Assembly: GCA_009103225.1 (NCBI GenBank)
Contig: RHPI01001043.1
Coordinates: 63,978 to 127,977, forward strand
DNA length: 64,000 nt
From: Chlorokybus atmophyticus
Taxonomy: Eukaryota; Plantae; Mesostigma and Chlorokybus algae
Direction of reading: 5' to 3'
The translations under genes were made by a program, and so were the position numbers. Shown here in pieces: positions 1-29,400 of this stretch. How positions within the stretch are numbered: position 1 is the first letter of the stretch; every line of letters starts with the position of its first letter. The notes under the pieces are model-generated. The model did not search any database and was not told the origin of the DNA. It saw nothing but the letters and a program-made list of their open reading frames with translations.

Positions 1-34
1 CATAGACATGTATCCACTCACACCCTCCCCTCAG

Positions 35-3000
35 GTGGGGCAAGTGGTTCCGCGAGCAGTGGGCTGTTACCTCCACAACCAGCGACCCTTCCCCTTCTGA
101 TTGGCATGGCAGCGAGGCTTACTGGCTCGGTCCCAACGTTCCATACACTTGCCCGGGCGGGTCCACTCCTGCCACAAACGGGCAGGGCTGCCAAAACATC
201 GACCCGCAATACACACCGAGAGTTTCCTACTTCCATGTGAAGTTTCCATATTCGGTCCATGACGATAAGAGTATTGTGACCGAGTGTCCGGACCCGTTTT
301 ACTGTGATTATAAGGGACCGGGAGGGAATGTGCCGAGTAATTGTGGGAGTGCGGTTAATGCGTATGTGACGGATAAGACCAAGTGCGCGCCGTGGTCACA
401 GGTGTGTGTGCGTGTGCGTGCGTGTATCTGTATCTGTGTGCATGTATCTCTGTGCCATTGTTGACTCTGTTGGGGATGCAGGTTTACGGGTTCTTCTATG
501 GTGATGGCAACGCTGAGGACATCATCATGCTGGTGGATTCCATCGACGATACGAACAACCTAATCATCGGAAACTACCTGACGGGCGTCAGCCGATGGAC
601 ATACGATTACAGGTATGATACCAATACCACATGTTGGGTATACACACAACAACAACAAATACCCAACCCAACCCAACATGCGTGTCACACGCGCAGTTTG
701 CCTCCGAGCGGCTCATCCATGATTGCCTCCCAACCCGCGACATACGTCGCTTACTTCACCGGCGGCGACCGCGTGTACGAGTGCAGCGTCCCTTGGAACA
801 CCAACCCTGGCGTGTGTCCCACCCCACTCAACTACCTCCTCAACAACAACGCGCAGGGCCGCTTCCGCTTGGAGATCGAAATCAAAGTCACGGGAGATGG
901 CAACCGCTCCCCTATAGTGACACAAATACCCATCATGCCCGTCATGCACGTGGCGCATCCCAACTATGCGCGATTCCAAATAGCGGCATATGACCTCGAT
1001 CCCGTTGACAATAGGAACTTACAATTTAGGTTTGGTAATACGCGTGAGATGGGTGGGATTATGAGGAGTAAAGCGGATGGGGTTGTGAATAGTGCGGCGT
1101 ATTATGGCAACTTTGATTGCAATCAAGCCATGTATGAGGAGGATAGGGATGGAGATGGACAACCGGATAATAAGTGTCCCGATGATAGGACGCCGGTGCA
1201 GACGCCGCAAGCGGGAAACTCGTTCCCGACCACGGCCAAAGTGCCGGGACTCGTCGTGTGGCAGGTATGTGTGTGTGTGTGTGTATGTGTGTGTGTGCGT
1301 GTGCGTGCATGTATAGATGTGTATGCTAATCTGACCACCTGTTGGCTATCAGACCTGGCTGGATAGTGCTCCGGAGCAGAAGCTTCGTGCCGGTCTTTAC
1401 AACATGGTGGTGATGGTGTCGGACGGCAAGGTGAAGGTGCCGCTCGACTTCATGCTCTACCTCTACGACGGCAACCTCAACTTCTGCAACGAAAACTGCC
1501 TCAGCAACGTCGCCGGGACACCCACATTTGCCAGTACGTGCGCGTGCGTGTTGCATAGTCACTTGCATCGTCGTCAAGCCACTGAGTCACACCCAACAAC
1601 ACAGATAGCGATGGTATCTACGGCACCCAGCACTGCACCATCTGCGGTCTTGGAGATGGCGACTTCACCCTCTGCCAGCCCGATTCGGAGAACCTCGGCT
1701 CCGGCAACTCCACCTGCGGAGAAGTGAGCAGTTGCTGACGTTGACTCACTTCTGTCACTTGTTGAAAACTGCATTGCACACATACGCGCCCACTCGCACG
1801 TGAAAACATAGTGCACACACGCACACAAACAACAAAGTAAGCCCACAAGCCCAAACGCACGCCCACGCGCCCACACGCGCCCACGCACGCATACATATAT
1901 ACGCACACGCACACCCCAACACCCACATCCCCACTCAGGTTTCTGGCACCGCTCTCGTTCCCGTCCCCACCTCCTGCAAGCCCAACACCATGCCCACCTT
2001 CATCTCCACCGACGGCGACCAGTCCCGCAACCCGGGCGTCGAGAACTGGCTCGCCGCGTTGGACCTCACACAGTACAACGTCCCCGTGATGACAAAGTAC
2101 AGGGGAGATCCCTTCCAGTTCGATATCATCGCCGAAGACACGGACGATTGCACCACGCTGGACATCGAGACGACGGGTCTGCCTGAGGGGGCGTTCTTTG
2201 AGGACTATGTGGACTTGACGGAGCAGGGTGTGAACGGGGCCAAAGGGAGCAGGTTGTTTAGTTGGGAGGCAAGCGATGCGGATAATGATGATAGGCCCGC
2301 GCTGTCGCAGGTGGGGATGGGGGATGTGTTGGGGTGTATGTTGGGTTGGGTTGGATTGGGATGGGGTGGGGTGTGGGGGGATGGGGTGGGGCGGGGGTGA
2401 TGTGGGGCTGATGTGAATTTGTTGTGCAGGTCTGCTTCTATGCGTTCGATCAGTACCTCATCACCGCACTGCCGTTCTACTGCATCCAGCTTAAGATCAT
2501 TGACCGTCCCGTCCCAGAAGAACAGGTATGTTGACTTTGATGACACATTGGTGTCTGCACGTGTGTGTGGCACAAGAACATGCGCAGTTGCACACACGCA
2601 CGCATGTGCGCATGCGTGCGTGCCTGCGAACGTACGCACGCACGCACACACACACACACACGTGTACACAACATCATTGTATCCAACTGACCTTCCAATT
2701 CACACCAGGTCCTTCTGCGTTTCGACTGCAAGCTCGCGCTGCTTTACCAGACGGCAGAAAAGCGCTACGGCGTGTACGACGCGGGGACGTACTACTGGTC
2801 CAACTGCACGTACGAGGACTACGCGTGGCACCACGCAGCAATCGCCGTTGACGAAGCTGGAAGCGGCTCACTCATCGGTAATGAGCAGAGAGAGACACAC
2901 ACACACACACACACACACATGTGGCTGTGTGCATGCGTGTGTGATATCGCTAACTTGCCTACTGAACAGTTGACGGGAGTGTTGTGGCGGAGTTTGTCAC

Positions 3001-6000
3001 CTCCACCTACCCGACCATGTGCGATATCGTCTCGGCGCCCCCACCTCCAACAAGAAGGTGCGATTTTACAAGCCTCACTCAACTGCACACTTACACATTA
3101 CGCGCACACTCACATTCGTGCACATGGGCGCAAAACCAACTACGTGCACGCACGCGCGTGCGTGCACACTTACACATACACACATACACTTACACATACC
3201 CCCACCCACCCGCCACAGGTTGCTTTCCTACAACGACGTTGTTTCCGGCTCCCTCCCCTCTCCCCTCTACACTCCCGAGATCCGCAGTGGCTTCGTGGAC
3301 GTCAATGATGTTGTCGCTGAGGGCGACCCGGACGCGTGCTGCACGTTCAAGATCGGGATGGCGTGCCCCGCGAGTCACTTACCGTCCTTCGACGGGTTTG
3401 TCGACGAGGTGGTGGTGTACGACAGGAAGATCACGGTTGAAGAAGTGTGGGTGAGTGATGATGAGAACACGTACTCTGAGTGGGGTTGTTCACCTTGAGA
3501 TAGCACACGCGCACACGCACGCATGCACGCACGCACACGCACGCACGCACGCACATGTGCACGCACGCATACACATGCATTTGTGCTAATATGTGTGGCT
3601 CTCTCTTGTAGGATGTTATGTTCAGGATGCCGATGCACCTGCCCACGCGCGTGCTGGAGGCGCCGCGCGGTCTGCAGTTGGATGTCACGGCGGGAAGGGT
3701 GCTGTGGGCGAGGTTCAACAACCCGTGCCAAGAGGGGAAAATAGGTCAGCGAGGGAGTGAGTGTTTGTCTCTTGAGTACTGTTGCAACAGCAGTTGTAAG
3801 ACAAGTTCGATCATGTCGTGCAGTCGAATGTGTACATGTGCGTATGTGTACATGCAAGTACACATGCACACATACACATATACACATCAATGTGTGCACC
3901 ACATGCAGCAATACTTACTCGTCCGTTCACCAATGCTTCTCCTAAGATGCGTGCGTTCTGCAGTGGTTTCTCCCCCACCTCCTTCCCCTCCTCCCCCCCA
4001 TCCTCCTCCTCCCACTCCTCCCCCTCCTTCTCCTCCCCCTCCCGACACGGGCGGCCGTCGCCGCCTCCTCCAGATGGAAGGTCCCCCACCCAACACTGTC
4101 ATCGACCACGTCACGGACAAGGCCGGGTACACCGCCGGCGTGTACAACAACAACGAGACAAACATCATTGATGTGGATGATGATGTTGTCACGTTTGCGG
4201 GGAGTAGTTTCCCAACGCATTCCAAGTATGTGTACACGCCGGCGCCGTTCATGCCTGCTATGTTAGAGGGTGAGGGTGAGGAGCGTGTTCTGCATGTTGG
4301 GGATGCGAACGATGTTGTGTTTGGAGGTGTTGGGTTCGCGCGCTCGCCGTTCTTGCAGTGCGGGTTCGGGATGGAGGATAACAGAGATGATGTGGGGATG
4401 TTGTATCGGCCGCGGGAGGTGAATGATCAACCCTTCTATGATGAGTACTTTAGGGATATGCCGAAGGTTTACGAGTATGAGAGTGGCCGAGAGTGGAAGG
4501 AGACCACGTTTGGGGATGTCGCACCCGCATTTGTCGCGGATGTCAACGGCAACGCTTTGACACATGATGAAGTCGTCGATACCATCAACTCTGCGGTTAG
4601 TGTGTTTGCTCACGCACAGGCTTGCTCGCATGCGCGCGCGCACATAGATGCAGGCACTGCGCACACACACATACACACACTCACACGCTCTCGGGCCTGA
4701 CTGCAGACCTTCTACCTCACAAACCCCCACACCGACCGGCAATCCGCGTACCTCTTCTCCCCGGGTTTCCCTTTCATCTCCTGTTCCTCCCCCTCCCCAT
4801 CTTTCTCCACCCACAGAGCCTCCCTCACAGTCCTCAACGGCGGCCGCGTGGCCGCCACACCCCAACACGTCACATTCATGGAGCGCGTGGCACGCCTGTC
4901 CAACACAACGAGTGCGACATTGAGTGTCTCTGTACCGGAGGACGCGATGAGTATGAGTGTGGCGATGTGGGTGAAGGTGAAGGAGGCCACGGGTGATGCG
5001 CAGACGGTGGTGAGCGCGGAGGGTGCGGGTGGCACGAGTGTTGCGGTGCAGTTTGTGGATGGGAAGTTCCTGCTGGCGGCTCCCGCTGTTGTCACGTAAG
5101 CTGGATTGACATGCAATGCACACATGCACACACACACACACACACACACGCACGCATTCGTTGTTTAGCTCCCATAATACAAGTGCACATGTTTGTGTAT
5201 GTTGGTGGGCGCGCGCGTATGTGCATGGATGAGTGTGTCTGCCACCTCCTGCACATGCACGCACAGTTGTACACGTAAGCGCCTGCATGCGCTTGTAGGC
5301 ATGCATACACTTGATATGTGCACTCGTATGTCGCATCTGGACATGCTTGTACATTTATGCACATTCAACTTACTCATCACCTGTGTGAGCAGGCAGCAAG
5401 AGCAGGAGGCCAACACGTCCACAACAGGCCAATGGCACCATGTTGCCGTCTCCATCAACCGCGTGGCCACGCTCTTCATCGACGGCGTGACCGTGTACGA
5501 GAGCGAGTCCCTCACCATCCCAACATCTCCTCTTTCTCTCGTGCTCGGCCCCATCGACGCCGACATCGACGAGCTGAGAGTATACTCGCACGGCATCGAT
5601 GAGAACACATTACCCCACATCATGTTCAACAAAGACCTTCCCGACAACAACAGCGAGGAGCTTACATTGGCCGCACACATGCGCTTCACCGATGCGCTTA
5701 TTGACGATATCTCAGGGAACTTGGCTGATGTCAATGGTGCTGTCGAGTATATCTTTGCGGCCGTGCCTTGGCAACCAGCTTATATCGACGAGGTGAACGA
5801 CGTATTGGTGGAGTTGAAGCCTCTCGCTAAGAGCAAGATGACGGGAGGAGAAGAGCTGGTTGTTAAAGGGTTCAACTTTGCTGCTTCGCCATCGTTGCAA
5901 TGCGTGTGGGGACACAAAGTGCTCGTCCATGACAACTCTCTCTGTGAGGTACATAAACACCTGCGTATGCATACGCGCGTGTGGGTATGTGTACGTGCAC

Positions 6001-9000
6001 ATACGCACATGTGCATATGTATATGCGTGCGCGCACGAACACACATGCAAGCACAGCGTGCGCACATAGACACACAATTGCATCCTGATTGGTGTAACAT
6101 GCTGATATATACGTATCCGCCAGGTTGACAGCAACATTAATGCCACCGGCTGCTTGGAGGGCCTGGACTTGATATCCTCCATCGCTCCCGCACGCACATG
6201 TGCGAAGCCGATGTCGGCCCCGACCTACACCATCATTCCAATATACTCCACCGACGCGACCGTCAATGAAGCCGGCACGGAGATATCTTGCATCACACCT
6301 GTTGTGAATGAGACTCTTGTATTGGATTTCGGCATCGGCGGGTTGATGAGCGAACCCGTCAAGTGGGCTTTCACTGAGGTTGCGCTGGCGTGTGAAGGCG
6401 TTGGGTCGTATGCGACAACTGAGCAGGAGTTTGGTTTGGTGTTTGACAAGAAGAGAGCGTTTGCGTTCGGTGGGTGGGTTATGCCGAGAGATACGAATGA
6501 AACAGCCAGCGTGATGGCGTTTGATAACCCGCAGTCCACGCATGGACGAGTGTCGATTGATTATGATGGAGAGGCTTTCTCGTATTTTGACTCCTATATT
6601 GGCTCCATCTCTCACGTAAGTACATGCGAATTGCAGCATACACATGCATGCACACAGACAGCCGCAGACACACACACTCGCGCAAACACACGCCAGCACA
6701 TGCGCGCGCGCACACCCCCACATGCACACCTATGCACGCGTGCGCGCGCACACGCATGACTTTGCGCATTCGTGCATACGTGCACACACACATACATGTA
6801 TGCACACGCACACACTCACACTAACGTTTCACACTCATGCAGGCTGCTTTTGCCACCCCCAACATGTGGCACTACGTCTTCGTTTCCGTTGCTTCCGACG
6901 GCGAGGGCGTCTTCTACGTCGACGACTCTCCCCCCCTCTTCTTCACCACACGCGGCCGTCCCTCAGGTTCATTCACCCTCTGCAACACTGGCAATGTAGC
7001 CAACAACCAGCCCTTCTCTGGCCTCATCGATGAAGTGAAGTTGTTCACCCGCGCAATGTCCACACGTGAAGTGTATCACCACATGTGGGGTCAACTAACC
7101 GGCTTTGAGGACGGTTTGGTTGGTTATTACGGCTTCAATAGTCTAAACCAAGCTGGCAATCAAGTGGAGAGCTTAACCGGTGATGCGGTTGCGGCGTTAA
7201 CTCTAACCGGTGCTCAGTTAGTTGAGTCCTCTGCTGTTTGGCTTCCCGCTACTGTTATCGATATCCAGCCCGGTAATGGTGATATTGCCATCACCGCAGC
7301 GAATATCGCCCCGAGCAAGTGGCTGACTGCCTCTTTCGATGGAGTTGATATCAACGACCCGTCTCAGATAACAGTCGAGGGCGATATCATCATTGTGATG
7401 AGGAGTCCGGCCCTGCCTATGGGGTCGATATCGGCGTCGGTGATGAACTCACCGACATCGGCTTCATCCACAGATGCTATGGAATACGACAACATGCCAT
7501 CCATATCGGATCTGCGGGCCCTACTGGAAGCCCACTACACTTTCAGCCTCACTCTTCCCGCAGAAGACAACAGTGGCTTTGTTGTTGTGGACTACTCTGG
7601 CAATGAGAGACACGGCAGCTATGTGTTTGGCGAAGACGGGTCCAGCACAGTCACCAAGGTGGGTGTACTAAACTCAACAACATGACCAACATTGTGGTAA
7701 TGTGTGCATGTGGACTAATGTGTGTATCTCTCCCCCCTGTAGGATCGCAATGCTGTTGATAACGGGGCGGTTGTTGTTGGTCCACACGCGCGTGGAGCGG
7801 CGATATCCATCCCCGTCCCAGCAGACTACTTGTCTCATGTTGCTAATGGCACTGAGGACGCCCTGTATGATCCCTTCACTGTCTCCATGTGGATCTACAT
7901 TGAACATAACCAGACGGTAAGTGCCGTCTGTCTTTGTGCATGTGTGTGTGCGAGTGTCCGCGTGTGGGTGCATGTGGGTGCGCGTGCAAATGCGCGTGTG
8001 TACCTGTGCATGTGCGTGTGTGTGTGTGTGTGCGCGTGTGCATGTGGGTGCAGGTGTCCGTGCATGAGCGTGTGGTGTGCATGCGCATGTCAGCGTGCGT
8101 CTGTGTCATCGTGTGCACACACGCAAGCGTGCACATGCATGTGTCACTTACTGACAGCTTGACTCATCCACAGTTTGAGGCCCCCGCATCCATCTTGGGT
8201 GCCTACAAGCACGTTGCTGGCGTGTTCAATGGTGAGAGCGGGTCCGTCTACCTCAACGGCCTGCTGCTGAACGACACGGATACCACCGACATCCTCGGCA
8301 TCGCCCTCGCCACCCTTCTCACCAACGGCACGTTGTCCAACATCAACGCGCGCATGGACGAGATGTGGGTTTACTCCCGCGCACTGTCTCAGCTGGAGAT
8401 ATCCGCTCAGTATTTCACTCACGCGTACGCTCTGGACTTTGCTAACGCCGATATCGATGCCACGGCCACAGCAGTTGCATCTTTCCCACCCAACAGGTTC
8501 ACGCTCGAAGCGTGGGTTTACTGTTACAACACTGCTGGAGTCCAGACAGTGATATCGAAGCCGCACGGGGACGACAACAAGCCCGGAGTCTCTTTCGGTC
8601 TCAACGACGGGCATGTGTATCTGTCTATCTACGGCGGGTGCGATATTCAGCCTTGCTACAACGCGTACGCGGAGCTGATATCGTTCCGAGCCGTCGCAAA
8701 GGAGCGCACGTGGCAACATATCGCTGCCACGTGGGTTGATATCGGTGGCGAGGACCCCGTCATGTTCGTTTATATTGATGGGATACTCAAAGACAAGCAG
8801 GTGTTCCCCGGTTTTGTCTCGGATATTGGTGCCACGAGTCCCTCTATCGTCGTTATCGGCCAGGAGTCCACAGCACAAGGGGACAACATGAACCGATTCA
8901 ACGGGTTGATAACACATGTTGCTATCACTGAAGATGGATTGAGACCAAGTGGTAATATCAGAGCTGCAATCACTCCTCCATTCGTTATCAAAGACAGAGT

Positions 9001-12000
9001 GCTCTGCCCTGTTTGGCTGAGCCGATATCTCGACTCCGAGGCCGATATCACTCCTCTGGCAGGGATGAAGTCCGACTATATCACTCACATGTGGACCTTT
9101 GGTGAAGGCACGGGCAGTGTATCCGCTGGTTGGGCTGATATTAATGCTCGAGAGCTGGCCGCAGTGTGGATATTGTCTCAGAGCCTCTGGACAAATGTCT
9201 CATATGACGACCCTGCAGCTGCTTTTGCAACAGAAGTATCGGGACCTGCCTTGGAAATCATTGATTCAGGCGAAGCCGGTTTGTTAACCATAACCGTACG
9301 AAGCTCGTGCTCGATTAGGCGGTTAGTTGGCAGTGATGTTGTGTCGATATCCGCCACATTGGCTGCAAACGACTCGATATCAGCTCAAGTTGGGGTTATT
9401 GACCTCAATGATGGGACGTATATCGCCACCATCACACCCGATATCGGTATATGCGGGGTGTATAATGTGGTTGTGACAGTCAATAATGAAACAGCAGCCA
9501 CATTCGACACATCTGCTATGGCGGGACCCGCTTCGGCTGCCACAACTTCTGCTTTGACAGACCCAACGTTAGCCAACAACGCGGGTGTGAAGACCACACT
9601 CACAGTGCAGGCGCGCGACATCAACGGGTGTGATAAATCTATGGGTGGAGATGGTATCGCTGTTCACCTCACCGGCCCGCACGATATCGACGCGGATGTT
9701 GAGGACATGGGCAACGGACAGTATGTGGTGTCGTATACGCCACAAGTGAAGGGCATGTATGTCATGACTGCCACCGTGAATGGCACACAAGGACCCGAGA
9801 GCTTCATCTCCAACGCATGTGTACACGTCGCAGGTGAGGGGATATACGCATGTGTACACGTCCTGTGGTGTTGTACATGGTTTGCGTGTTGTACATGTTC
9901 CTGATGTTGTTGTGTTGTTGTGTCGGGCACAGCGGGTACGTCCTTGAACTTCAACGGTCAGACTAGTGTGGAGGTCTTGCACACGCCCTCGTTGTCTCTC
10001 ACCACGCCAGGGCTCACGATGTCGGCGTGGGTGAACCCGCAAGGCATCGTGCGGCAGTCCCCGCCACCGCCCTCACCTCCACCACCATCGCCCCCGCCAC
10101 CCTCACCGCCTCCACCACCTCCACCGTCGCCACCGCCGCCATCACCACCTGCGCCATCACCTCCACCACCCTCACCATGTAAGTGTGTGTGTGTGTGTGC
10201 GCGTCAGTGTGTACGTGCGCGCGCGCACACACACACACAATGCGTGCATGTGTGTGTTGTGGCAGAAGAGATGCACGATTCTTATGTTGCTGTGTGTATG
10301 TGTGCAGCTCCTCCCCCACCTGAGGCGGGTGGTAGGCGTCGTTTGCTGGCTTCTGGCGGCCCGTACTGGCGTGACCCGAGCTACCGTTTCATCTTCAACA
10401 AGAACGGTCAGGACTACGTGTACACGCCTTCCAAGAGCTACGACTTCAAGTTCACTCCCGACTACAGCGAGCTCGTGGCCACGGTTTACGTTGGCAACGC
10501 CGAATGGCGTGAAGTGAGAGCTCCATACACCAACATGGACACGTGGACACACGTAGCAGCCGTATACAACCAAACAACCTTCTCTCTATATCAAGACGGG
10601 GAGCTTATCGGACAAGAAATCTTCTCTCTTCCCAAGAAGATTGCATCCGATATCCTCCACAGACCGCTCGATATCGGCTTCGCCTTCACGGGGATGATCG
10701 ACGAGGCCACGTTGTGGCGTGTGGCGAGGACACAACAAGAGATTGTGGACACGATGCATTGCCCGCCATACATGGAGCTAGATAAGGTGGCTGCGTATTG
10801 GAGCTTTAATGATGGGAGCGGGGATGTGGCAAAGGGGTACGCGCATGACTGCTGGGTGGAGGACTATTCCAAGACATGCCTTGAAGGTGCGTGTGTGTGT
10901 GTGCTTGCGTGCACACGTGCGCGTGTGTGTGAGTACTCTCCCCAACCAGCCAGTCTGCTCTTGCGCATTCACACCTTGCGTGTTGTGCATATCTGATGCA
11001 CCATACACATCACTGACAAGGCGGTTGTTTGTTGTGTTCATATGGCGTTGTGGTAGTGTGGATTGTTGACACTCTTACGCGTGTATCACCCAGGCAACTT
11101 GGACCCCTGGCACGCGCCGTTGGGTCCCCCCACATGGGAGAACGACAACACCACCACCGCCGTTGAGGACGCTTTCTCCCACCTCGGCGTGGGCATTGTA
11201 AGTGCCCTCCACACCAGCGTGTACGGTCCCGGGTTGGCTTCCACACGCACGCACGCGTCGACACAACACGTCCTCATCCAAGCCAAGGACGAGTGCAAGT
11301 ACTGTTACGTTGGACGGGAGGCTCACTTTGTCATTGAGACAACCAAGTTTGATATACAGTACTACAACGATGTTCATGATAGCGTGGAGTATCCGCTTGT
11401 TGTGAAGAGTGTGACAGAGAGATACGATCTCGCGCCAAACTGCCCCGCGCAAGATATCTGCTTCGGGACTGCCGATGTCGGTAACGCCACCACCACGAAT
11501 AGCAGCGATAGCGCTGCCTTGCGCAGGCGCTTGCTCGGAGATAATGTTCCCGAGGGGCTGTTTGTCGCCAACCACACCATCGATATCGACGTGCTGGGCG
11601 AATTCGCTTGCACGGGCGATCTCTGGGCTGCCTTGTATGATATCGGCAACGCTGGCACTTACTTCCTCAATGTGATGCTGCTGGGTGACGGCAATATCAT
11701 CCCGGATGTCCCTCTCACCGACGAGCCCTTTGTTATAGAGGTCACGGCCGGAGATATCGCCAGCTTGGAGATGCTGGATGCGCCGCCATCGATACAAGCT
11801 ACTGCAGGCGTTATGACTGCGATTACCGTGATTGCAAAGGATGGAACCGAGGAACAGGTGAGCACACTATTGCATTGTTGCAGTGTGTGTTTATATTTGT
11901 GTGCATATACGCGCGCGCACGCGCATGTCTGCAATTGTGCGCGTGTGTCCACACATGCATGTTTCTGTCTGTCACTGCATGTACGTGCTCATGTGCACAT

Positions 12001-14471
12001 ATCTGTGTGCGTGTATAGCATCTCTCTCGTTGACACCAACACACTTAACTCTCCTGCAGGCGAACATCATCACTGATCGCGATCTCACGGAGCAGATATC
12101 CACAATGGTGTCCATCACCCAGGCCAGTCTCCCCGACGGGGTGGAGATAGCCACCCTCATCAACAACATCAATGGAGGCCGATACCCCGTGTCTTTCATC
12201 GTGTACACGCCAGGCGTATACACACTCTCCATCAACGGGACCGAGACGGATATCGTTGTCTCACCTGCAGAAGCCACAACTGCTCTGAGTGCTGGAGCGC
12301 TGCCGAAATCGCTCGCACGGTCCGGACACGCTGCTGTGGCTTATAACAGGGATGTGTTTATCTTCGGTGGTGCGGATATTACCACGGGGGCGAAGCTGAA
12401 CGATACGTGGGTGTTGCGTGATGCTGATATCGAGCCCTCGAGCACACTCAACTATGTTATCCACCTCGCAGTGAAGCCCAGCGCTGCCTTTGATATCGAC
12501 ACCACCTTCCGTATCGCTGTCCCGACAGATTATCTGCTGGAGGCAGGGCAGATATCACCCTCATGCACGGATGTCGCCTTCAGGCTTGAGGGAGGACCCG
12601 TACTCGCATACTATGTGGACATGTGGACTTGTGGCACGCAAGAGACAGTCTTCTGGGTCCGCGTCCCCGCCACCGCTACCACCATCTCAGGCGATATCTT
12701 CACTCTGGAGATGTATTTCGGTAACCCCATGGCCGCTATCAGCATTCAGCTGCCTGAGTCTGTCTTCGATTTCTATGAAGGATTCGAGGGTGGAATCGAC
12801 ATCGGAAATTTCCGGCCCGCTATTGGCTGCGGGCTTACTGATGCATCAGCAGATGGGTTTATTATCGCTGAGGAGCTGTCGTATGCGGGTGATAAGAGTC
12901 TGTATGTCAGATTCGGCACCGCTGGTGCGATTGAGGCCGATATCGACCCCACGGACAGCTTCATCCTGCGTGCGAGCTTCTATGACTCCGATAGCGAGAG
13001 CGCGGCTCATTATATCAGTCCCAATTTCGATATCTGCACCGAGAGCGCCGATAGCGAGCGTCTTCTCCTGCCCGGTGATGCAGATATCGACAACACCCAA
13101 CATAAGAGCACTGCACTCGGCGTGTACACGCTCTCGACAAAGAGCAAGTATGCACTCGCATCGCCGTGGGAGTCTGTGCCAGCGAGCCGACACGCTGGCT
13201 GGCGTCACTTTGAAATCCGCAGCAATGTCACCGGCACAAGCGCGTACATCGCTGGCGAGCTCGTCTGGTTTGATATGGCTCCCATTAACATTGATAAGGT
13301 GTTCATCAGTGCCGGCATCGCTGGTTTCAACGACCAACTTGGAGCGCCCAACATGCTCCCTGCACACGCCTTCTGGGACGAGATATCCGTTGTCAAGGTA
13401 CGTGTGTGTACGTGTGTGTGACTACTGCGTGCGCGTATGCGTGTGAGTGCGCGTGCTCGTATACACATGTGCGCATGCTCACACTCACACGCACACGCAC
13501 ATGCGCATGTGCCAGTTGATGTGCATGTGGGTATCTGTGTGTGTGCGCACACCTCGCAATCATCCAGCGCTCATACATGCCTGCACTGTGCATAACAGCT
13601 GCTGAACTCTGCATCCCTGCAGGTACACGCAGCCGCAGTTGATATTGAGATCACAGCAGACTCACCCCAACGTGCTGACTTCGCACACGAGCGAACGTGG
13701 GAACAGTTGGACATCACAACCACGCAGCAAATCCCACCCGGGCGTGATGGCCACACCGCTGTCATGTACAACGACGCAATGTACATCTTCGGTGGTGAGG
13801 GCGACAACACTGTCGTGTTCAACGACGTGTGGGAGTTCAACCTCACGACGCTCGCGTGGAGAAACATCAGCACACAAGAGGGTGAGAACACTCTCACCCC
13901 GAGCGCGCGATATCAACACGCAGCTGCTGTCAGCTCCGATGGCGTGATTTATATCTTCGGCGGGCGCAATGATACAGACTTGTTTGAGGATGTGTGGGCT
14001 TTCGATATCGCTGCCAGCACGTGGATTGAGGTCGAGAGGGTTGAAATCGGCATTCGCTACGGCCACACAGCAGTTGTATCTGAAGATGTTGTTTATATCT
14101 ACGGTGGGTACACCGATGACGGCGTATCCGACAGCTTCGTCGCTTTCGATATCGCCACAGGCGACTTGATATCGCTGCCGGGCTTCCAGCCAGCTTCTTC
14201 ACATTACACTGGGCGATATCGACACGCTTCAGCTGCACAAAGCGGCTTCGTGTATATCTTTGGTGGCTCTGATACTGACTCAGCAACAGAGTACACAGAC
14301 ATGTGGCAGTTTGACATCGGCTCCAAGGCATGGACTCTTGTTGAACAATTCACCGGTGATATCGCTCCTGGAGCTGCGGGCTTTGCGATATCGAGCAGGG
14401 TGTGCTGGCAAGGCGGCCGGATATCGGACACCCTCTGTTATCCTGTGCCATACGCCAGCCATCAAGGTTGA
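35..14471 (+). CDS. Giant multidomain extracellular protein, 5'-partial, about 3,650 codons in 23 exons. It has cadherin/He_PIG-like Ig repeats, about 6 LamG/concanavalin A-like domains, TIG/IPT-like and filamin-type Ig repeats, Ser-Pro4 linkers, a DUF2341-like domain and a C-terminal Kelch propeller.
   Basis: Hand-spliced exons keep phase throughout: 35-401, 482-612, 697-1264, 1353-1533, 1605-1723, 1939-2310, 2430-2525, 2709-2877, 2970-3057, 3219-3450, 3612-3744, 3964-4595, 4707-5095, 5393-5948, 6124-6615, 6843-7658, 7743-7916, 8174-9833, 9933-10178, 10308-10886, 11094-11857, 12060-13397, 13623-14471, all GT-AG. LamG motifs: WHHAAIAV..FDGFVDEVVVY, WHHVAVS..DIDELRVY, WHYVFVS..FSGLIDEVKLF, FTLEAWVY..WQHIAATW, WTHVAAVY..FTGMIDEATLW. 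Filamin-like: VEDMGNGQYVVSYTPQVKGMY. Kelch: GHTAVMYNDAMYIFGG, YGHTAVVSEDVVYIYGG. No C-terminal TM segment seen; start codon lies left of the window. Confidence 0.88.
402..13622. repeat. Intronic alternating purine-pyrimidine (CA/TG/CG/TA) microsatellite tracts in most introns of the giant gene; similar tracts occur in introns at 15-16, 18, 23-30, 34, 44, 56-58 and 62.8-63.9 kb
   Basis: Directly visible, e.g. 1265-1315 (GT)n, 2620-2665 (CA)n/(GCAC)n, 7935-8145 TG-rich, 13398-13550. Confidence 0.95.
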
Positions 14472-14475
14472 TATC
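7260..14475. repeat. Highly iterated dispersed palindrome GATATC (often CGATATCG) within coding exons
   Basis: Manual count of 41 GATATC sites between 7260 and 14470, e.g. 7347, 7383, 7427, 8398, 8450, 9024, 9044, 12426, 12492, 12551, 14148, 14168, 14215, 14358, 14387, 14420. About 1.8 would be expected at uniform base composition. Confidence 0.9.
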
Positions 14476-14864
14476 AACATTGTCGTCTTCTCAAACAAGC
14501 AACCATAGAGCAGACTGCAGTGGGAAAACGCTCACTCTCATGACTTCGTCACATTGACAAGTTTGCCTGCGGTCAGTTAGGTTGTCTGTGCATTCAGTAG
14601 CATTGTGGTTTGTGTACTTATTCAATTGCTCAATACACACAATAACGCGTTGTCTTGCCAACATAACTGTCTCCTTGCATCTCTGCTGTAAGCGCACATC
14701 AACATTAACCTGCTTTTCAATACCCAAGCTGCCGTATAGCATAATACAAGCAGCTAATAGAAAACATACAAGTGAAAACTAGCTTATAGTGGTAACATGC
14801 ATAAATCAACAAAACTGTTTGGGAGGCAGGCGAGCAAATGTATACATAAGTGATGTGCACTACA

Positions 14865-21230: not shown

Positions 21231-21769
21231 NNNNNNNNNNNNNNNNNNNNNNNNNNNNNNNNNNNNNNNNNNNNNNNNNNNNNNNNNNNNNNNNNNNNNN
21301 NNNNNNNNNNNNNNNNNNNNNNNNNNNNNNNNNNNNNNNNNNNNNNNNNNNNNNNNNNNNNNNNNNNNNNNNNNNNNNNNNNNNNNNNNNNNNNNNNNNN
21401 NNNNNNNNNNNNNNNNNNNNNNNNNNNNNNNNNNNNNNNNNNNNNNNNNNNNNNNNNNNNNNNNNNNNNNNNNNNNNNNNNNNNNNNNNNNNNNNNNNNN
21501 NNNNNNNNNNNNNNNNNNNNNNNNNNNNNNNNNNNNNNNNNNNNNNNNNNNNNNNNNNNNNNNNNNNNNNNNNNNNNNNNNNNNNNNNNNNNNNNNNNNN
21601 NNNNNNNNNNNNNNNNNNNNNNNNNNNNNNNNNNNNNNNNNNNNNNNNNNNNNNNNNNNNNNNNNNNNNNNNNNNNNNNNNNNNNNNNNNNNNNNNNNNN
21701 NNNNNNNNNNNNNNNNNNNNNNNNNNNNNNNNNNNNNNNNNNNNNNNNNNNNNNNNNNNCCCCCCCCCC
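21231..21769. other. Assembly gap (539 N)
   Basis: N run flanked by a G-run on the left and a C-run on the right. Confidence 1.
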
Positions 21770-22595: not shown

Positions 22596-25384
22596 ATGGC
22601 GCCGCCTCCATCGCTGTTGATGTGTCTGAGTCTATTCTCGGCATGGGCGCTGCTGCTGCTGCTCGAGACGGTCGCACCCGCTGCGGCGCAGCTGAACACA
22701 GAACCCTGGCCGTCCTCAGACGGCTACGCAGACGTGAGCGAGACTGTTCTGGCCATGTGTGTCTTGGGCTTCACTGTGCTTGCAACCCCTGGCCTACCAC
22801 GACGCATGCGTATGCATGCACACCTGACTGCCTGGCTGACATGATGCGTTGCTCTCACGCACACACGCAAGCTTCGCTGGCACAAAGGCACGCACTTGCC
22901 TGCTGCTGCATGCTGGGGAGAGGTGCGACCCCTTTGCAGCACGCATGCACCTCACGCCCTCAAACAATTGCTCACAGGTGTCCGAGAAGCACATCCCTGT
23001 TGCTCCGGGTGAGCTCTGCGACGACGTCATCGGTCGCTTCTCCTTCACGCAGCCGAAGCAAGTGTTTGTGTCGCAGTTTCAGCCCTTCAATGCGACCAAA
23101 GGGAACCGACCCTACTGCGATGGCCCGCCGTGGCAAGGCGTTGGACTCGAGGCATCCTTTCAGACAACCTACTTTGTACCAGCCAACGGCATTGTCGGAG
23201 TGTGGATTGGAGGTCAGCTGCTGCATGTGTGCATGCAGTGCATATACATACATACATACATACCCCACGAACGAATGCACTGATTGTTGCTCGGTCCTCC
23301 ATTCACATAGTGTGACCCTGGCTGTGGTGTACACACACGTGCCGTGCGTGTGCATGTGTGTCCACGCATTCCCTTGTGCAAGCGTGCAGAGCATCCGTAT
23401 GCGTATGCGTGCGCGAATGCGCGTGTCTATGCAACGCACACGCACGCGTGCCTGCGACGAGTGACTCACCTCTCCCGATACATGCATACAGGCGTGGAGA
23501 TCATGCGGGGTTATTTCCCAACAGGCAGAACATCTGCGAGTTTCTACCCTGATTTCAGAGGCACCAAGCGCTGGACAATCGAGAAGAGCGTCACTCAGGT
23601 CAGAGACTGATGTTACCAACAACATAGTCAACGATCAGCCCAAACCCTTCTCTCTTTTTCCCTCTCTCTCTCACACATGCATTTCATTTGTGCAGTTCTA
23701 CTCGTTGATGCGCGCGAAGCAGACGGTCAAGGTCTCCGTTGTGTACGATGACAGAGGCAACGACCGGTACCGTCCCGTCCTCAACGCCACCTTCACGCTG
23801 CGCTACTACAGGATTGAACCCGAACACGACGACAAGGCGGCAACATTCCCGCCCGTCGTGCGCCCCATATCGCGAGGTGGGTGGGAATATGATGGTATTA
23901 TAACGTGCGCATGAAGTCACACAGCGTTGTGGTGCCCGCGCGCATGCACACGCGCGCACACACACATGTGCACATGCTGCGTGGCGCCTCAGGCGGGGTG
24001 AATACGGCACCTTGGTTCACGCTTGCAACGGGTGGCATTGGCAACGCCACCCTCACTCTTCCCCGCAACATGGTGTCCGCAAGCATCGAGGTGCACCTCA
24101 CTCGTGCACCCACATCCACACACATGGTCATTGCTAACTCATCGTCACACCAACCCCCTCCCAGGTGATTGGTTCGAAGGCGCCGGAAGCTCCTTTCAAC
24201 CGAAACGAAAATGAGGGCAGGGACAAGCAGGTGCAGGTGCTTGTGGACGGTGTCACGGCGGGGTTCGCTTACGTTGGTTTCGTCGAAGAGGACCGTTTGC
24301 ATGAGCCACTCCCACTCAGCTACAGCCTCGACATCACGCCGTTGGTGGGACGACTCGTAGACGGCAAACCACACACATTCGCACTCAAGAACCCACACCA
24401 ACAAGTGAGCACAAGCGACTGTGTGCGTTCTGCTACTACTACTCAACTACTAAAGTGCTGTACTTGTGGCAGCTTCTGTTGGTTGGTGCGAATGTGTTTA
24501 TATATGTGGATGGCCGGGTGAATCGCACATCCGGCGCGGTGCTGCAATCGTCCTCGAGCGGACCTTTTCAGCTTGTTGACAATAAACGCGAGTCGCCTGA
24601 TGGGACGGTGTGTCCTGTTGATGAGTCTCCGTACTACAGCTGCAGTCGTAAGGTGGCCAACTCCAGCGTCACGCTCAGGGGATCCATCACAGTAAGTGGC
24701 AAACACACGCATGTGTATGTGTGTGTATGTGTGTGTGTGTGCGCGCGCGCGCGGGTGGGTGGGTGGATGCGCGGGCGCATGCATGTGCGCACGCGTGCGT
24801 GCGTGTGTTGTTGGTGATGTTGCATGGGCATGGCATGACACATGGTGACCACATCAACAACCAACCACACTTCTGTTCTCCTGCAGTCTTCGGCCGGCGT
24901 GGAGTACGTCAACGTGACACAGACTGCCAGCTTGGTGTGGGAGGGCGAGAGCGGCTACTGCAGCGGGCTCGACATCGATTTGCTTATCACCCAGCAGACC
25001 TCTCGCGGCAACACGCCCACAAGAAGCACGAGTGTTGGTCGCACGGAGAGCGTGTTCGCCATCCACGATCGCTCTTGCCAAGACCTCGGGTGCTCGTATT
25101 ACGCCACGTTGGACTCGTTGTACAGCGTGAGACGCACACGGAAACGTGTACTGCTCAGAAAACAGTATCACCGCACGTACTTGCAACATTCGGATGTGTC
25201 CCGCGGCTATCCGGACTACAGCTACGACCCATGCGATTATTCTGAAGACAGCAGCTCTGAGTTTGTGTATGCGGACTATGAAGACGCGCGGTGCTTCACG
25301 CTCAACACCACCAACGAGTACGACACCACCGAGGGCACCTACAGTACAAGCAAGGACACCGTGAAGTGCCCACCGCGCAAATGA
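22596..25384 (+). CDS. Secreted PNGase A (peptide-N4-(N-acetyl-beta-glucosaminyl)asparagine amidase A)-like protein, divergent
   Basis: Signal peptide MAPPPSLLMCLSLFSAWALLLLLETVAPAAA. Spliced segments GVWIG-GVEIMRG, WTIEKSVTQ-FYSLM, LTLPRNMVSASIE, VQVLVDGVTAG, YSLDITPLVGRLVDGKPHTF follow the PNGase A family skeleton. Stop at 25382-25384. Confidence 0.72.
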
Positions 25385-26404: not shown

Positions 26405-29400
26405 CTACCTGCGCCCCTTCGCCTTGCGTGCGCCTTTGCCCGCCTTATTCACGGGCGCGGGCTTGGCGTGTCCCTTGCGCGTGGCAGCCTTACCAGCTCC
26501 CAACTTACGTCTATCACTCTTCATGCGTCGATCAAGACGTGGACCCGAGGGCTTCGCGGCCTCTTTCCTAGTCATCTTACCCCCACTCTTTCCCCCCTTC
26601 CCCTTCCCTCCCGTAGAGGCCGCCTTGGCGTACAGCTTCGCTATCATCTTGCTCTTGGACTTCTCCGGCACGTCGCCCATGTCCGCGATGACGTTGGCAC
26701 GCACCTTCACCGCCTCGAGCTTCTTTGTCATGCGCTTGCGTCTTCTCGCCTTCGCCTCAGCTACTTTCTTAATAGGCCGTGCATCAATAGCTTTGAATGT
26801 GGCCTTTGCAGCCTCCATTTCCTCTTTTGTAATGGGTGCCTGCGCTTTCATGTGCTTCCTCTCATCTTCCACAAACCAACGCGGGAGGTTGTCGTCGTGG
26901 AAAGCGTATCGGTTGTACGCCGCATCCAACATGTCTTCCCTTTGCTTCTTCCTCAGGATTTTCTGACCATACGCCAACACAGCCGCCTTATCATCCGTGT
27001 CATAATCAGAAGTGTCTATACTATCATCACTCCCATCTTTCATCTCAGCCGGCACAACTTGAAACCCGCTGTCATCAGCCTTTGCAGAAGTTGTGGCCGT
27101 TGCTGCTGCAGCCTTTCTCATGAGCGTGCCCTCATCCTCCTGTTCTTCATCTTCAGAAGTGTCCATTGCATCCGTGCGTGGGGGCTTCACACTCTTGTTG
27201 TGCGTTATGGCAACACCAGCAACATCATCACCATCATCATCATCGTTATCAATACCTGCCCCGGCCGCAGCAGCAAACTGCGCAAACACGGGCTGACCAA
27301 ACCACTGCTCAGTGACTTTGCCCGCAGACGGCTTCTTAGAGGCTTTCTTGTCTAGTGAGACTATCAACGGGTTGGCTTCGGCCTCATCCACGGTGTCGGG
27401 CAGCTTCACTCTCTTCTGCAGGGTCTTCAAGGCTTCGTCCTCATCCATTTCATCCTATGTGTGTGTTCACATGTGTTAAAAAACACGGCAAACACGCATG
27501 TCGATACCACAGCAAAACAAACATGTGCGTGTGTGTACATACTGCATGCGTGCATGTGCGTGTGTTTGTGAGTTTAAGTGCGTGCATGCATGTGTGTAAG
27601 CGTTTGCGCGTGTGCATTCGCACATGCCTGTATGCGCATGCGCGCATGTGTACGTGTGCAGATGTGCAAACTTGTGGCGATTACCAACCTCATGTGGTTG
27701 GGCCTCTTCTCCTCCCTCCAATCGCGCCCGCTGTCTCCGCAGCCTCGCTTTGGAGGCTCCCGCAAAATGCTCGTAAGACCTATCAAGATACTCTTCCATG
27801 AGCGCTTGATATCGCCTCTCCTCACCATCAAAATCAAGGTCCTCATCCTCCTCTTCATCATCATCGCCAACATCCTCCACATCCGCGTCGCTGCCGCTGG
27901 TACCCCCAACATCATCAATATTCTCAGGGACATCATTGATATCTTCATCATCATCTTCATCGGCGACCTTCTTGAGGCTTGTTGTGGTCTTGATGGTGTT
28001 GAGTGAGAAGAGATCCGTGTTGTGGGCGTCGTCGGCGTAAGGGTTGTCGGCGATGGCAGCGTCCCCGCCACCGAGGGCGATGCGCGCACGCTGCTTGGCT
28101 TTACTCTTCATGAGCCTCTTCTTTACACGCCGCTTCTTAGCGTCTATTGAGGCCTTCAGCTCTCGCATCTCCGCCAGGAGCTTCTTCTCCTCACTCGCAT
28201 CTTCATCCCCATCCTGTCAAACACCACACTATCATCATAATGCACTCAGCTCACATAAAAGTACCATCAGCAGTGAGCTGTGACTTGCATGTATGGGCTT
28301 GCCTGTGTGCGCATGTTTGTCATATGACTTTGCATGCAGCAACAAACGTGCAAAACCAGGTACACATGACTGGTACCTGTGCTTCAGTGCCGTTCTCTTC
28401 AGTTTGGTCCTCCTGCAGGGCAACAGGGTTGAGTGTTGGCAACATGCATGGCACTGTCAAGCTGTGTGTGCGAACAAGTGCAATAAACATGAATACCTTA
28501 TCTGTGTCGTCTTCTTCATCATCTGAGGCGTCCACTGCCGTTGTATTCAACTGCTGGCGCATCTGCACGCGCCACCTGGCCAGAAGGACATAGTCAGCAA
28601 GAGTGTGGAGGGAAACAATTTCAGTGATACTCAATGGTACGCTGCATCAACAAGGCTTGCGAATAAGATTCTTACAGTGTACATCGGTGCTACACTGTAG
28701 GTGAGTTGCACAAATAATGCGTGCATGAGTGCTTGTCTGTGTACACTCACATACACGTGTGCACGCGCGCGCATGTGTGTGTACGTGCACGCGCGCGCAT
28801 GTGTGTACACAGTTCACTGACCTGAGCAGCTGCTTAAACTCTCGCTTGCCCAGCACTTTCAAGTCAGCGCAAAGCTCCTTGATCTAAACACCAAAGCAAA
28901 GGGGTCATGAAGACACGAAAGTAACATGACTGCACCCCAGCAGATAACCAGTGTTCCATGTGCGTACTTCATCCGTGGTGTTGGCATGGCTGGCAACTGC
29001 AGTGCAGTCGGGCCCGCTCAAAGAGAAGTTTGAGTACTGGCCAAGCATCTCCACCGGCTTATCGCTATTGACAAAGTCCAGCACCGAACATGACTTGTAC
29101 AGCGTAGACGCACCATCTTCATACCTGTAATGCAACAGTAGTCAACATTGATGAGTTGCACAAAATGCCACAACCAACCCGCACATGCGCATGAACAGCT
29201 TGCATCTGAGGACACATCCATACCCTTCTCGGTGTCGCTTGCGCTTTGTGTCTCTCATAACATCCACAGTCTGCACAATGACACTGGCATCAGAGTCTAT
29301 GACATGATGTGGCTTGGTATGATAAGTACCATCATCATTATGTTTAACAACACCTTTGGTGCTTCATCTGTTTCTTTGAAGAGGTGGCGGGAGTCGAGCA

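Follow-up and report, generated by a model that had tools for sequence, protein, structure and literature searches.

The giant LamG/filamin gene and its codon wave

The window, a stretch of 64,000 nucleotides of the Chlorokybus atmophyticus genome (contig RHPI01001043.1), opens inside a gene for a giant LamG/filamin protein of cell-surface type, of which about 59 N-terminal residues are encoded upstream of the window. The 23 exons inside the window yield the Pfam domains Laminin_G_3 and Filamin and end with a stop codon at 14469–14471, the introns are short (71–297 nt), and introns occupy similar places within the repeated LamG modules. Homology searches were done exon by exon, and exons were concatenated only for frame checks and codon statistics; a word search with exon 3 gave no match. 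The gene model is collinear with the 3956-aa ortholog of Mesostigma and with the Chlorokybus JGI model P0001. At a match of 92–96%, P0001 was considered as a sequence from a sister species; since its mismatches are concentrated at exon ends, and since our exon junctions agree with those of the paralog and the Mesostigma ortholog, we regard it as an alternative gene model of the same genome. A quick exon-chaining gene finder recovered exons 1–15 exactly but over-chained elsewhere, and was set aside for the neighbouring genes. Third-position skew differs widely among neighbouring exons: the Spb1 exon next door (1 kb) is G3/T3-rich and has no C-rich start, and the neighbouring ORF 24839–25381 is C3-rich.

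Table 1. Gene, wave regions and blocks in the window; block borders are crossings of the smoothed silent-site skew.
Feature	Position	Strand	Description
Giant LamG/filamin protein gene	35..14471	+	GT-AG model, no internal stop
Strong-wave part	35..7700	+	16 introns, exons mostly 90–630 nt; variance z ~+20 vs synonymous shuffles
Weak-wave part	7700..14471	+	Long exons rich in GATATC; sole remnant is the C/A zone after acceptors
G/T block	225..531	+	Exon 1 3' half, intron 1, exon 2 start; peak +0.65
C/A block	531..985	+	Exon 2 3' part, intron 2, exon 3 5' half; peak -0.47
G/T block	985..1434	+	Exon 3 3' half, intron 3 with (TG)20, exon 4 5' half
C/A block	1434..2141	+	Exon 4 3' half, intron 4, exon 5, intron 5, exon 6 5' half; peak -0.58
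G/T block	2141..2575	+	Exon 6 3' half, intron 6, exon 7
C/A block	2575..3355	+	Intron 7 3' part, exons 8–9, introns 8–9, exon 10 5' half; peak -0.45
G/T block	4159..4595	+	In exon 12, ending at donor; peak +0.64
C/A block	4595..4907	+	Intron 12, exon 13 5' half; peak -0.65
G/T block	4907..5090	+	Exon 13 3' half, ending at donor; sharpest flip
C/A block	5378..5697	+	Exon 14 5' half; silent-site crossings
G/T block	5697..5980	+	Exon 14 3' half; silent-site crossings
G/T block	6301..6586	+	Exon 15 3' part; peak +0.54
C/A block	6586..7105	+	Intron 15, first 260 nt of exon 16; peak -0.56

Synonymous codon choice in the intron-dense first half of this gene follows a genuine and very strong wave, although the sequence-only reading that first described it overstated its reach. 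In a 21-exon model with a continuous ORF, third positions alternate between about 20 C in 30 and about 26 G+T in 30, with an amplitude of z=+18 against synonymous shuffles. The variance of third-position skew over the first 1770 codons reaches z ~+20 against such shuffles, and the standard deviation of the smoothed skew over 35..7700 is 0.18–0.22, compared with 0.065 in shuffled sequence. As the reading had predicted, silent-site skew changes with distance from the splice sites beyond what synonymous shuffles produce: in the long exons below 7.7 kb the second half exceeds the first by +0.51, against +0.05 expected (z=+9.7), a value that 0 of 2000 shuffles reach. The wave fades past ~7.7 kb, where the two halves of exons do not differ significantly (z=+0.8); codons of the weak-wave part up to 11857 give a keto z of +1.3 and a GC-skew z of +3.7. 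Eight exons had been named as flipping from C-ending to G/T-ending codons, and the flip is clear in six of them (35–401, 697–1264, 1939–2310, 4707–5095, 5393–5948 and 6124–6615) but weak in 3219–3450 (-0.18 to +0.08) and 10308–10886 (-0.12 to +0.13 by halves).

The switch had been described as one from C/A-rich to G/T-rich codons. C is indeed lost and G and T are gained, but A is rare at third positions throughout, and the change at fourfold sites is mainly from C to G with T following (C.54/G.18 in C/A blocks, C.15/G.55 in G/T blocks). Twofold C/T codons stand at 91:9 in C/A blocks vs 36:64 in G/T blocks, and the silent-site shift amounts to ~1.2–2.1 logit units per site. The two block types are compositional mirror images: the k-mer spectrum of one resembles the reverse complement of the other (r 0.79–0.88), G/T blocks contain 33–44% G and 17–19% C with the mirror image in C/A blocks, and runs of three or more G occur at 28/kb in G/T blocks vs 5/kb in C/A blocks, runs of C showing the reverse. 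Blocks are 180–780 nt long, and GC content has no peak at the crossings.

The effect reaches beyond third codon positions, and every site class takes part. The change in GC skew between blocks is ~1.1 in introns, ~1.0 at third positions and 0.2–0.3 at positions 1 and 2, which move about 1/4 to 1/3 as far as third positions. Amino-acid replacements relative to three orthologs track the wave as well (-0.19 +/- 0.04 in C/A blocks, +0.06 +/- 0.04 in G/T blocks). The introns consist of alternating purine-pyrimidine tracts (0.74 vs 0.53 in exons), and the orientation of their microsatellites goes with the wave; the one canonical G4 motif is the (TGGGG)11 of intron 6 (2311–2429).

The intronless ortholog of Chloropicon and the intron-poor one of Cymbomonas display no wave (z -1.6 to +2.4). 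A pattern driven by the protein is therefore rejected, as the orthologs lack it and synonymous shuffles abolish it. An account without any special process, in which codon usage varies by chance or composition was inherited together with repeated protein modules, could appeal to the wide skew differences among neighbouring exons and to the similar intron places in the LamG modules. Against values of z ~18–20 over synonymous shuffles, orthologs that have the same modules without a wave, and the participation of introns, we consider such an origin highly improbable.

Relation to exon-intron architecture

In exons of 350–700 nt, C-ending codons give way to G/T-ending codons 136–304 nt after the acceptor, and in five exons of 367–568 nt the flip lies at a relative position of 0.51–0.55 (0.51 for the up-flip of exon 3). 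Flips at exon centres are step-like; in exon 13, K3 passes from -0.67 to +0.80 inside ~90 nt, with fitted steps at 4908 and 5091. The down-crossing of exon 12 coincides with the exon end at 4595, where the fitted step is broad (centre 4600, width 117 nt). Every exon of at least 350 nt has a C/A-rich zone downstream of its acceptor. Mid-sized exons have both an acceptor zone (z -9.4) and a donor zone (z +8.5), whereas exons of at least 700 nt have the C/A-rich zone 30–200 nt past the acceptor (z=-5.1) and none before the donor (z=-0.15). A flip along each exon, as originally claimed, is thus not found: besides these long exons with an acceptor zone alone, the short exons 2 and 4 flip the opposite way, from G/T to C/A, and other short exons do not flip. 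The suggested phasing with splice sites is significant, with a nearest-splice-site rule of +0.129 and 0 of 2000 circular shifts reaching the observed phase, yet it is only partial. Taken together, the flip distance from acceptors, the universal acceptor zone, the phase above all circular shifts and the missing wave in intron-free or intron-poor orthologs support the conclusion that the wave is tied to exon-intron architecture.

The bias had also been said to continue into the introns. This is true of the two introns given as examples, 2311–2429 (88% G+T) and 1780–1938 (79% C+A), but overall the continuity of skew from exon to intron is weak (donors r=0.27, p=0.11; acceptors r=0.43, p=0.02). 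Some junctions coincide exactly with an abrupt change, such as the exon 13 donor (+0.70 to -0.40) and the border of intron 6 and exon 7 (+0.78 to -0.25). Introns 1, 3 and 6 are G/T-rich and introns 2, 5, 9 and 15 C/A-rich throughout their length, and in the 3' part of the gene C/A-rich exon starts adjoin G/T-rich introns.

Known classes of splicing signals in animals include A/C-rich enhancers in exons and G-rich or UG-rich elements in introns. The main rival to the explanation preferred below, which we rate as possible though rather unlikely, draws on this precedent and holds that bulk pre-mRNA composition is selected for exon definition: the stretch following each 3' splice site would be C/A-rich and pair poorly with itself, the stretch leading up to the 5' splice site would be G/U-rich, and together they would help the spliceosome or its cofactors to mark unusually long (350–700 nt) exons. 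Such selection would account for the anchoring of the wave to the acceptor with transcript polarity, the abrupt changes at some junctions, the phase above all circular shifts and the absence of a wave from intron-free or intron-poor orthologs. It fits poorly with introns that are G/T-rich up to the acceptor (1, 3 and 6) or C/A-rich from the donor (2, 5, 9 and 15), with exons 2 and 4 flipping the wrong way, with the lack of a donor zone in long exons and with the adjacent Spb1 exon without a C-rich start. Furthermore, amino-acid changes track the wave, and the per-site shift is large for so weak a benefit. Nor did we find an enriched motif: among 4–6-mers, 0–2 k-mers exceeded z>3 against within-block synonymous shuffles, the same as in replicas, at a power limited by ~550 codons per block type, and k-mer z scores against block composition had a standard deviation of 1.1–1.2. 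At this power, a motif-based exonic splicing enhancer code, with k-mers enriched beyond block composition, is therefore not supported.

Folding, methylation and strand skews

The sequence-only reading interpreted the mirror-image blocks as a splicing code or fold-back structure written in third codon positions. The connection to splicing is supported insofar as the wave is tied to exon-intron architecture; the fold-back structure and the third-position code are not. According to this model, G/U-rich and C/A-rich blocks would pair in the pre-mRNA, by exon fold-back or as an intron bridge, and thereby join splice sites. The compositional mirror symmetry of the blocks and the flips near the centre of the five 367–568 nt exons agree with such pairing, as do ~1.5–2 fold more predicted long-range pairs in separated blocks than in mixed controls and the predicted folding of exons 3, 6 and 13 about their centres; the fish (AC)m-(GT)n introns provide a precedent (PMC4691745). 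Exons are, however, no more stable than synonymous redraws without the wave (mean z -0.2) or shuffles with the wave intact (-0.7), and exon hairpins of extra stability are rejected. Nor does separating G/T from C/A yield a lower energy than mixing them. The remaining 4 of 7 exons have no predicted fold-back, no inverted repeats between blocks were found beyond low-complexity intron tracts, and many introns carry one block type only. Ten intron-centred G/T-C/A units gave a mean folding z of -1.4 to -1.7; in the strongest-folding ones the stability is local to palindromic intron tracts, and inter-arm pairs are fewer than in controls. In addition, any pairing over exons 2 and 4 would bring the wrong splice sites together and favour frameshifting exon skipping, and introns of this shortness have no need of a bridge. 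Block pairing as the cause of the wave is thus unlikely.

Decay by 5-methylcytosine deamination is rejected because CpG is intact in all block types (o/e 0.94–1.11, without depletion) and the C to T shift has the same size whether or not a G follows. Replication-type skew extends over domains of tens of kb or more and does not match blocks of a few hundred nucleotides, and a uniform, transcription-coupled G+T excess of the sense strand does not match blocks that alternate in sign around a mean skew of ~0 over 1–7 kb.

Recurrent DNA breaks near intron 3' ends or short exons offer another way to mirror-image blocks. The geometry of 5'-3' resection is established: it exposes the + strand to the left and the - strand to the right of a break, and single-strand base damage could then create G/T-C/A units. 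The sign of the G/T to C/A crossings appears to match this geometry, block lengths resemble those of resection tracts, and the G/T-rich introns next to C/A-rich exon starts in the 3' part also conform. Yet this process would need a hotspot every 0.6–1.2 kb in only part of one gene, the amplitude stays undiminished with distance from the putative break, the exon-centre flips are step-like, the crossings lack a GC-content peak, and we know of no documented sex in Chlorokybus. We therefore regard it as very unlikely.

A proposed strand-asymmetric substitution bias

The best explanation, in our opinion, is a lineage-specific, diffuse and directional pressure on base composition, whose sign is set by position relative to introns. 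It acts on introns about as strongly as on silent sites and less on amino-acid-changing sites, and is independent of CpG, specific motifs, specific base pairing and protein sequence. As its source we tentatively favour, while giving it somewhat less than an even chance, a substitution bias that differs between the strands and is coupled to transcription and splicing. The sense strand would be driven C/A-rich from ~130 nt upstream to 200–300 nt downstream of the 3' splice site; further on, mid-sized exons would be driven G/T-rich up to the donor and often across the short intron, with step-like transitions between the two kinds of stretches. Most likely, the agent would be biased mutation or repair (or a conversion-like bias) and not selection for a code, for example if the two DNA strands were alternately exposed in an R-loop-like manner. 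As G-rich sense RNA favours hybrids, positive feedback might sharpen the blocks.

This mutational reading is supported by the joint shift of all site classes, amino acids included, by the mirror-image blocks, by the intron purine-pyrimidine tracts and microsatellite orientation that follow the wave, and by the lack of a methylation signature, a motif, an RNA stability gain or a protein-level cause. On population-genetic grounds, moreover, the silent-site shift seems large for a selection that acts site by site on a bulk RNA property of a single gene. Against it speak the abrupt changes at junctions and the weak exon-intron continuity, as a regional DNA process should be blind to exon borders, and also the transcript polarity, with a universal acceptor zone and no donor zone in long exons. 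Exposure of the sense strand by ordinary transcription, furthermore, predicts a gain of G/T and not C/A blocks, so that antisense transcription or another step has to be assumed.

Synonymous codon choice is usually modelled per gene or genome, but here it is inverted inside single exons, and the introns determine where. A mutational cause would mean that a process linked to splicing or transcription switches the damaged or repaired DNA strand every few hundred bases; a selective one, that one of the earliest-branching relatives of land plants marks its exons by composition. Either way, models of codon usage, dN/dS and gene finding are distorted for the Chlorokybus genome, and the wave offers a way to test how coding sequence is shaped by introns.

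Comparison with known systems

Our literature search found no published description of such a wave. A more far-reaching possibility, which we put forward as speculation, is that Chlorokybus has self-organising strand-skew domains locked to exon-intron architecture, not known to have been described in any eukaryote, that within a single exon override the preferred codons and even the choice of amino acid; such domains would arise by mutation, if an alternating strand exposure starts at splice sites and feedback sharpens it, or else would be an exon-definition signal made of composition only. Among known phenomena, the splicing-coupled strand asymmetries (Touchon et al. 2004; Zhang et al. 2008; reviewed in PMC10030826) are similar in that G-vs-C and T-vs-A skews are placed by splice sites, as in Chlorokybus, and are absent in intronless genes. 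As portrayed in that review, however, these skews are uniform and opposite in exons and introns and accompanied by splice-signal motifs, whereas in Chlorokybus the sign flips inside exons, introns have both signs, the reach is 200–300 nt and codon choice itself is inverted.

Teleost (AC)m-(GT)n introns likewise combine complementary CA-type and GT-type low-complexity tracts placed by splice sites, with possible bridging. There, one and the same intron carries AC just downstream of its 5' splice site and GT just upstream of its 3' splice site, native introns clearly exceed shuffles in stability, and splicing of the bridged introns is reported to be independent of U2AF2 (Lin et al. 2016, PMC4691745). 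In Chlorokybus the polarity is reversed, with G/T on the 5' and C/A on the 3' side, exons are involved, many introns are of one type and stability is not clearly raised. Regions of transcription-coupled asymmetry or GC-skew R-loops share the joint enrichment of G and T on one strand, and the G/T blocks have the sequence features of R-loop-prone regions, namely positive GC skew and G clusters on the non-template strand; such regions keep a single sign along the unit or at its ends, but in Chlorokybus the sign alternates every 0.3–0.8 kb within one transcript. Finally, the intron-associated step changes in plant coding regions (Ressayre et al. 2015, PMC4684703) concern G+C content from exon to exon, whereas the Chlorokybus wave is a strand skew that flips within exons.

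Gene Model and Homologs

The window opens inside a large gene on the plus strand. Canonical GT-AG sites chosen to hold a single open frame yielded a model of 21 exons up to 11857 and of 23 exons up to the stop codon at 14469-14471, corresponding to about 3650 codons. Homology searches were run per exon, on single exon translations rather than on the joined protein, and the translations matched Laminin_G_3 several times and Filamin once in Pfam. A full-library search with exon 3 recovered the C. atmophyticus JGI gene model P0001, a Chlorokybus paralog (P0002), a 3956-aa Mesostigma protein, and Chloropicon and Cymbomonas proteins of 3400-3900 aa. In tblastn, collinearity with the Mesostigma protein holds over the entire gene, and P0001 confirms the junctions of exons 1-5 and starts about 59 residues before the window begins. 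P0001 is a fragment of 484 aa in which exons 1 and 3 end at different donors (340-401 and 1220-1264), whereas the CAG|GT donors used here are supported by the paralog and the Mesostigma ortholog. The few P0001 mismatches cluster at precisely these exon ends, where the paralog and Mesostigma agree with the present translation. Therefore, P0001 is a model of the same genome that differs in donor choice, and its assignment to a sister species was rejected. The public JGI annotation appears to split or truncate the gene. Conservation of this giant LamG/filamin/kelch protein extends across the green algae, and its gene has 0 introns in Chloropicon (CP031037.1; 3440 aa), about 4 in Cymbomonas (LGRX02001061.1; 3873 aa), and 22 or more in Chlorokybus.

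Strength and Extent of the Wave

Third codon positions of the gene swing to and fro: C takes about 20 of 30 positions in some windows and G+T about 26 of 30 in others, A being rare throughout. Measured against synonymous shuffles, the smoothed signal gave z=+18 for its variance over the 21-exon CDS. In the initial 1770 codons z was about +20, and from there to 11857 only +1.3 (keto, i.e., G+T skew) or +3.7 (G-C). That chance heterogeneity of codon usage produced this signal is scarcely credible. For long exons below 7.7 kb, the later half exceeded the earlier one by 0.51 (expected 0.05, z=+9.7), a contrast that was not significant above 7.7 kb (z=+0.8, synonymous shuffles). Twofold codons end in C or T at a ratio of 91:9 within C/A blocks and of 36:64 within G/T blocks, and fourfold sites change from C.54/G.18 to C.15/G.55. 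Introns have the composition A.33 C.38 G.16 T.14 at one extreme and A.12 C.09 G.45 T.34 at the other; the two introns singled out as strongly skewed in the sequence-only reading are indeed 88% G+T (2311-2429) and 79% C+A (1780-1938). Strong alternating blocks occur in the 64-kb window solely at about 250-10200, and only one gene within the window carries the strong wave.

The skew extends beyond silent sites: codon positions 1 and 2 shift about 1/4 to 1/3 as much, and amino-acid replacements relative to three orthologs track the wave. The protein sequence was rejected as the cause, as the intronless Chloropicon ortholog and the long Cymbomonas exons gave z values of -1.6 to +2.4 with the same statistic. 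Methyl-CpG decay was likewise rejected, with CpG o/e at about 1 everywhere and a C to T shift of the same size whether or not a G follows. Inside the blocks, 4-6-mers were indistinguishable from synonymous shuffles and gave no sign of a motif code.

Further features of the gene and its neighbors are listed in the table. GATATC is concentrated in long exons with a weak wave, so that GATATC and the wave split the gene between them. Local C-rich runs arising from the proline-rich spacers lie outside the wave proper. The Spb1 exon and the nearby ORF show no significant wave and have very different third-position skews; thus, third-position strand skew differs strongly between neighboring genes.

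Sequence features of the gene and the surrounding window
Feature	Position	Strand	Remarks
C/A to G/T flips	225, 985, 2141, 3355, 4159, 4907, 5697, 6301, 7105		silent-site smoothing
(TGGGG)11-like array	2342-2407	sense	intron 6; sole canonical G-quadruplex motif of the gene
Introns with alternating tracts (examples)	2590-2661, 3503-3579, 5957-6046		
Proline-rich low-complexity spacers (PPPPSPPPP type)	3968-4042, 10059-10177		exon 12 start; exon 19
GATATC, all copies	1-14600		47 copies, 45 exonic
GATATC region	6000-14600		chiefly exons 16, 18, 21, 22, 23; G mostly in codon phases 1 and 3
GATATC, dense part	7260-14475		40 copies; almost none in rest of window
Assembly gaps (runs of N)	21231-21759, 38401-38493		
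ORF near Spb1 exon	24839-25381	+	C3-rich (C 84, G 50)
Spb1 C-terminal domain (rRNA methyltransferase), 1-kb exon	26408-27454	-	sense strand G3/T3-rich throughout (G 138, T 83, C 73, A 55)

Geometry Relative to Splice Sites

All nine C/A to G/T flips lie 136-304 nt downstream of an acceptor, five of them at relative position 0.51-0.55 of exons of 367-568 nt. The opposite flips are found inside introns, where exons end, or midway through the short exons 2 and 4, and a single C/A block may extend across two or three short exons. Most block transitions are better fitted by a step than by a ramp. Exons of at least 700 nt possess a C/A-rich zone 30-200 nt past the acceptor (z=-5.1; negative in 5/5 such exons) and no skewed zone ahead of the donor (z=-0.15), while 350-700-nt exons show a strong zone at either end (acceptor side z=-9.4, donor side z=+8.5). 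A rule predicting G/T where the nearest splice site is a donor and C/A where it is an acceptor scored +0.129, a value reached by 0/2000 circular shifts, and explains the amplitude in part only. The skew of exons carries over weakly into flanking introns (r=0.27 at donors, r=0.43 at acceptors), and some exon-intron junctions show an abrupt change. Flip geometry, zones, and phase rule thus tie the wave to gene architecture with transcript polarity. To this extent the exon-phased wave proposed from the sequence alone stands, yet it does not take the form of one flip per exon.

Base Pairing Between Blocks

By k-mers, C/A and G/T blocks are mirror images (r 0.79-0.88) and therefore complementary in composition, as the sequence-only reading had suggested; the fold-back structure it derived from this gained little support, several results arguing against a designed fold. 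When exons were folded against shuffled versions, their stability exceeded neither wave-abolishing redraws (mean z -0.2) nor wave-keeping shuffles (-0.7). Folding about their own centre was predicted in 3/7 exons. For ten intron-centred units, mean z was -1.7 when shuffling was confined to the arms and -1.4 when the whole unit was shuffled; the strongest of them owed their stability to local palindromic intron tracts. In predicted folding, block separation raised the number of long-range pairs, and separated blocks were not more stable than mixed ones; inverted repeats between blocks were low-complexity ones only. Pairing across exons 2 and 4 would connect the wrong splice sites. The specific fold-back model, for which compositional complementarity speaks, is improbable.

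The introns consist mostly of alternating pyrimidine-purine tracts (alternation fraction 0.74, compared to 0.53 in exons and 0.57 in the remaining window), with (CA)n, (TG)n, and (CACG)n arrays and many short palindromes (CATG, CGCG, TGCA). These tracts are self-complementary and, judged by their sequence, Z-DNA-prone.

Proposed Cause of the Wave

As the cause of the wave we tentatively favor a strand-asymmetric substitution bias organised by introns. The underlying pressure is diffuse and composition-only, of similar size in introns and silent sites, leaking into amino acids, and large per site. On population-genetic grounds, such a pressure is more readily explained by biased mutation, repair, or a conversion-like process than by selection, which would need to act on thousands of sites that are each close to neutral. 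The main rival, selection for exon definition through bulk pre-mRNA composition, accounts better for the geometry than the substitution bias, but worse for the magnitude and the exceptions, and appears rather unlikely. For the favored substitution bias, the anchoring at acceptors, the polarity, and the occasional breaks at junctions point to a coupling with transcription and splicing. The G/T blocks have GC skew and G-runs as in R-loop-prone DNA, and the C/A blocks are their mirror image. An origin of the wave in break-and-resection hotspots is very improbable.

Comparison with Known Systems

A literature search found no description of the wave pattern. Its closest known counterparts are splicing-coupled strand asymmetries (review PMC10030826), the intron-bounded steps in G+C content of plants (PMC4684703), and the (AC)m-(GT)n introns of fish (PMC4691745). 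The fish introns have a polarity opposite to that of the Chlorokybus wave and clear extra stability.
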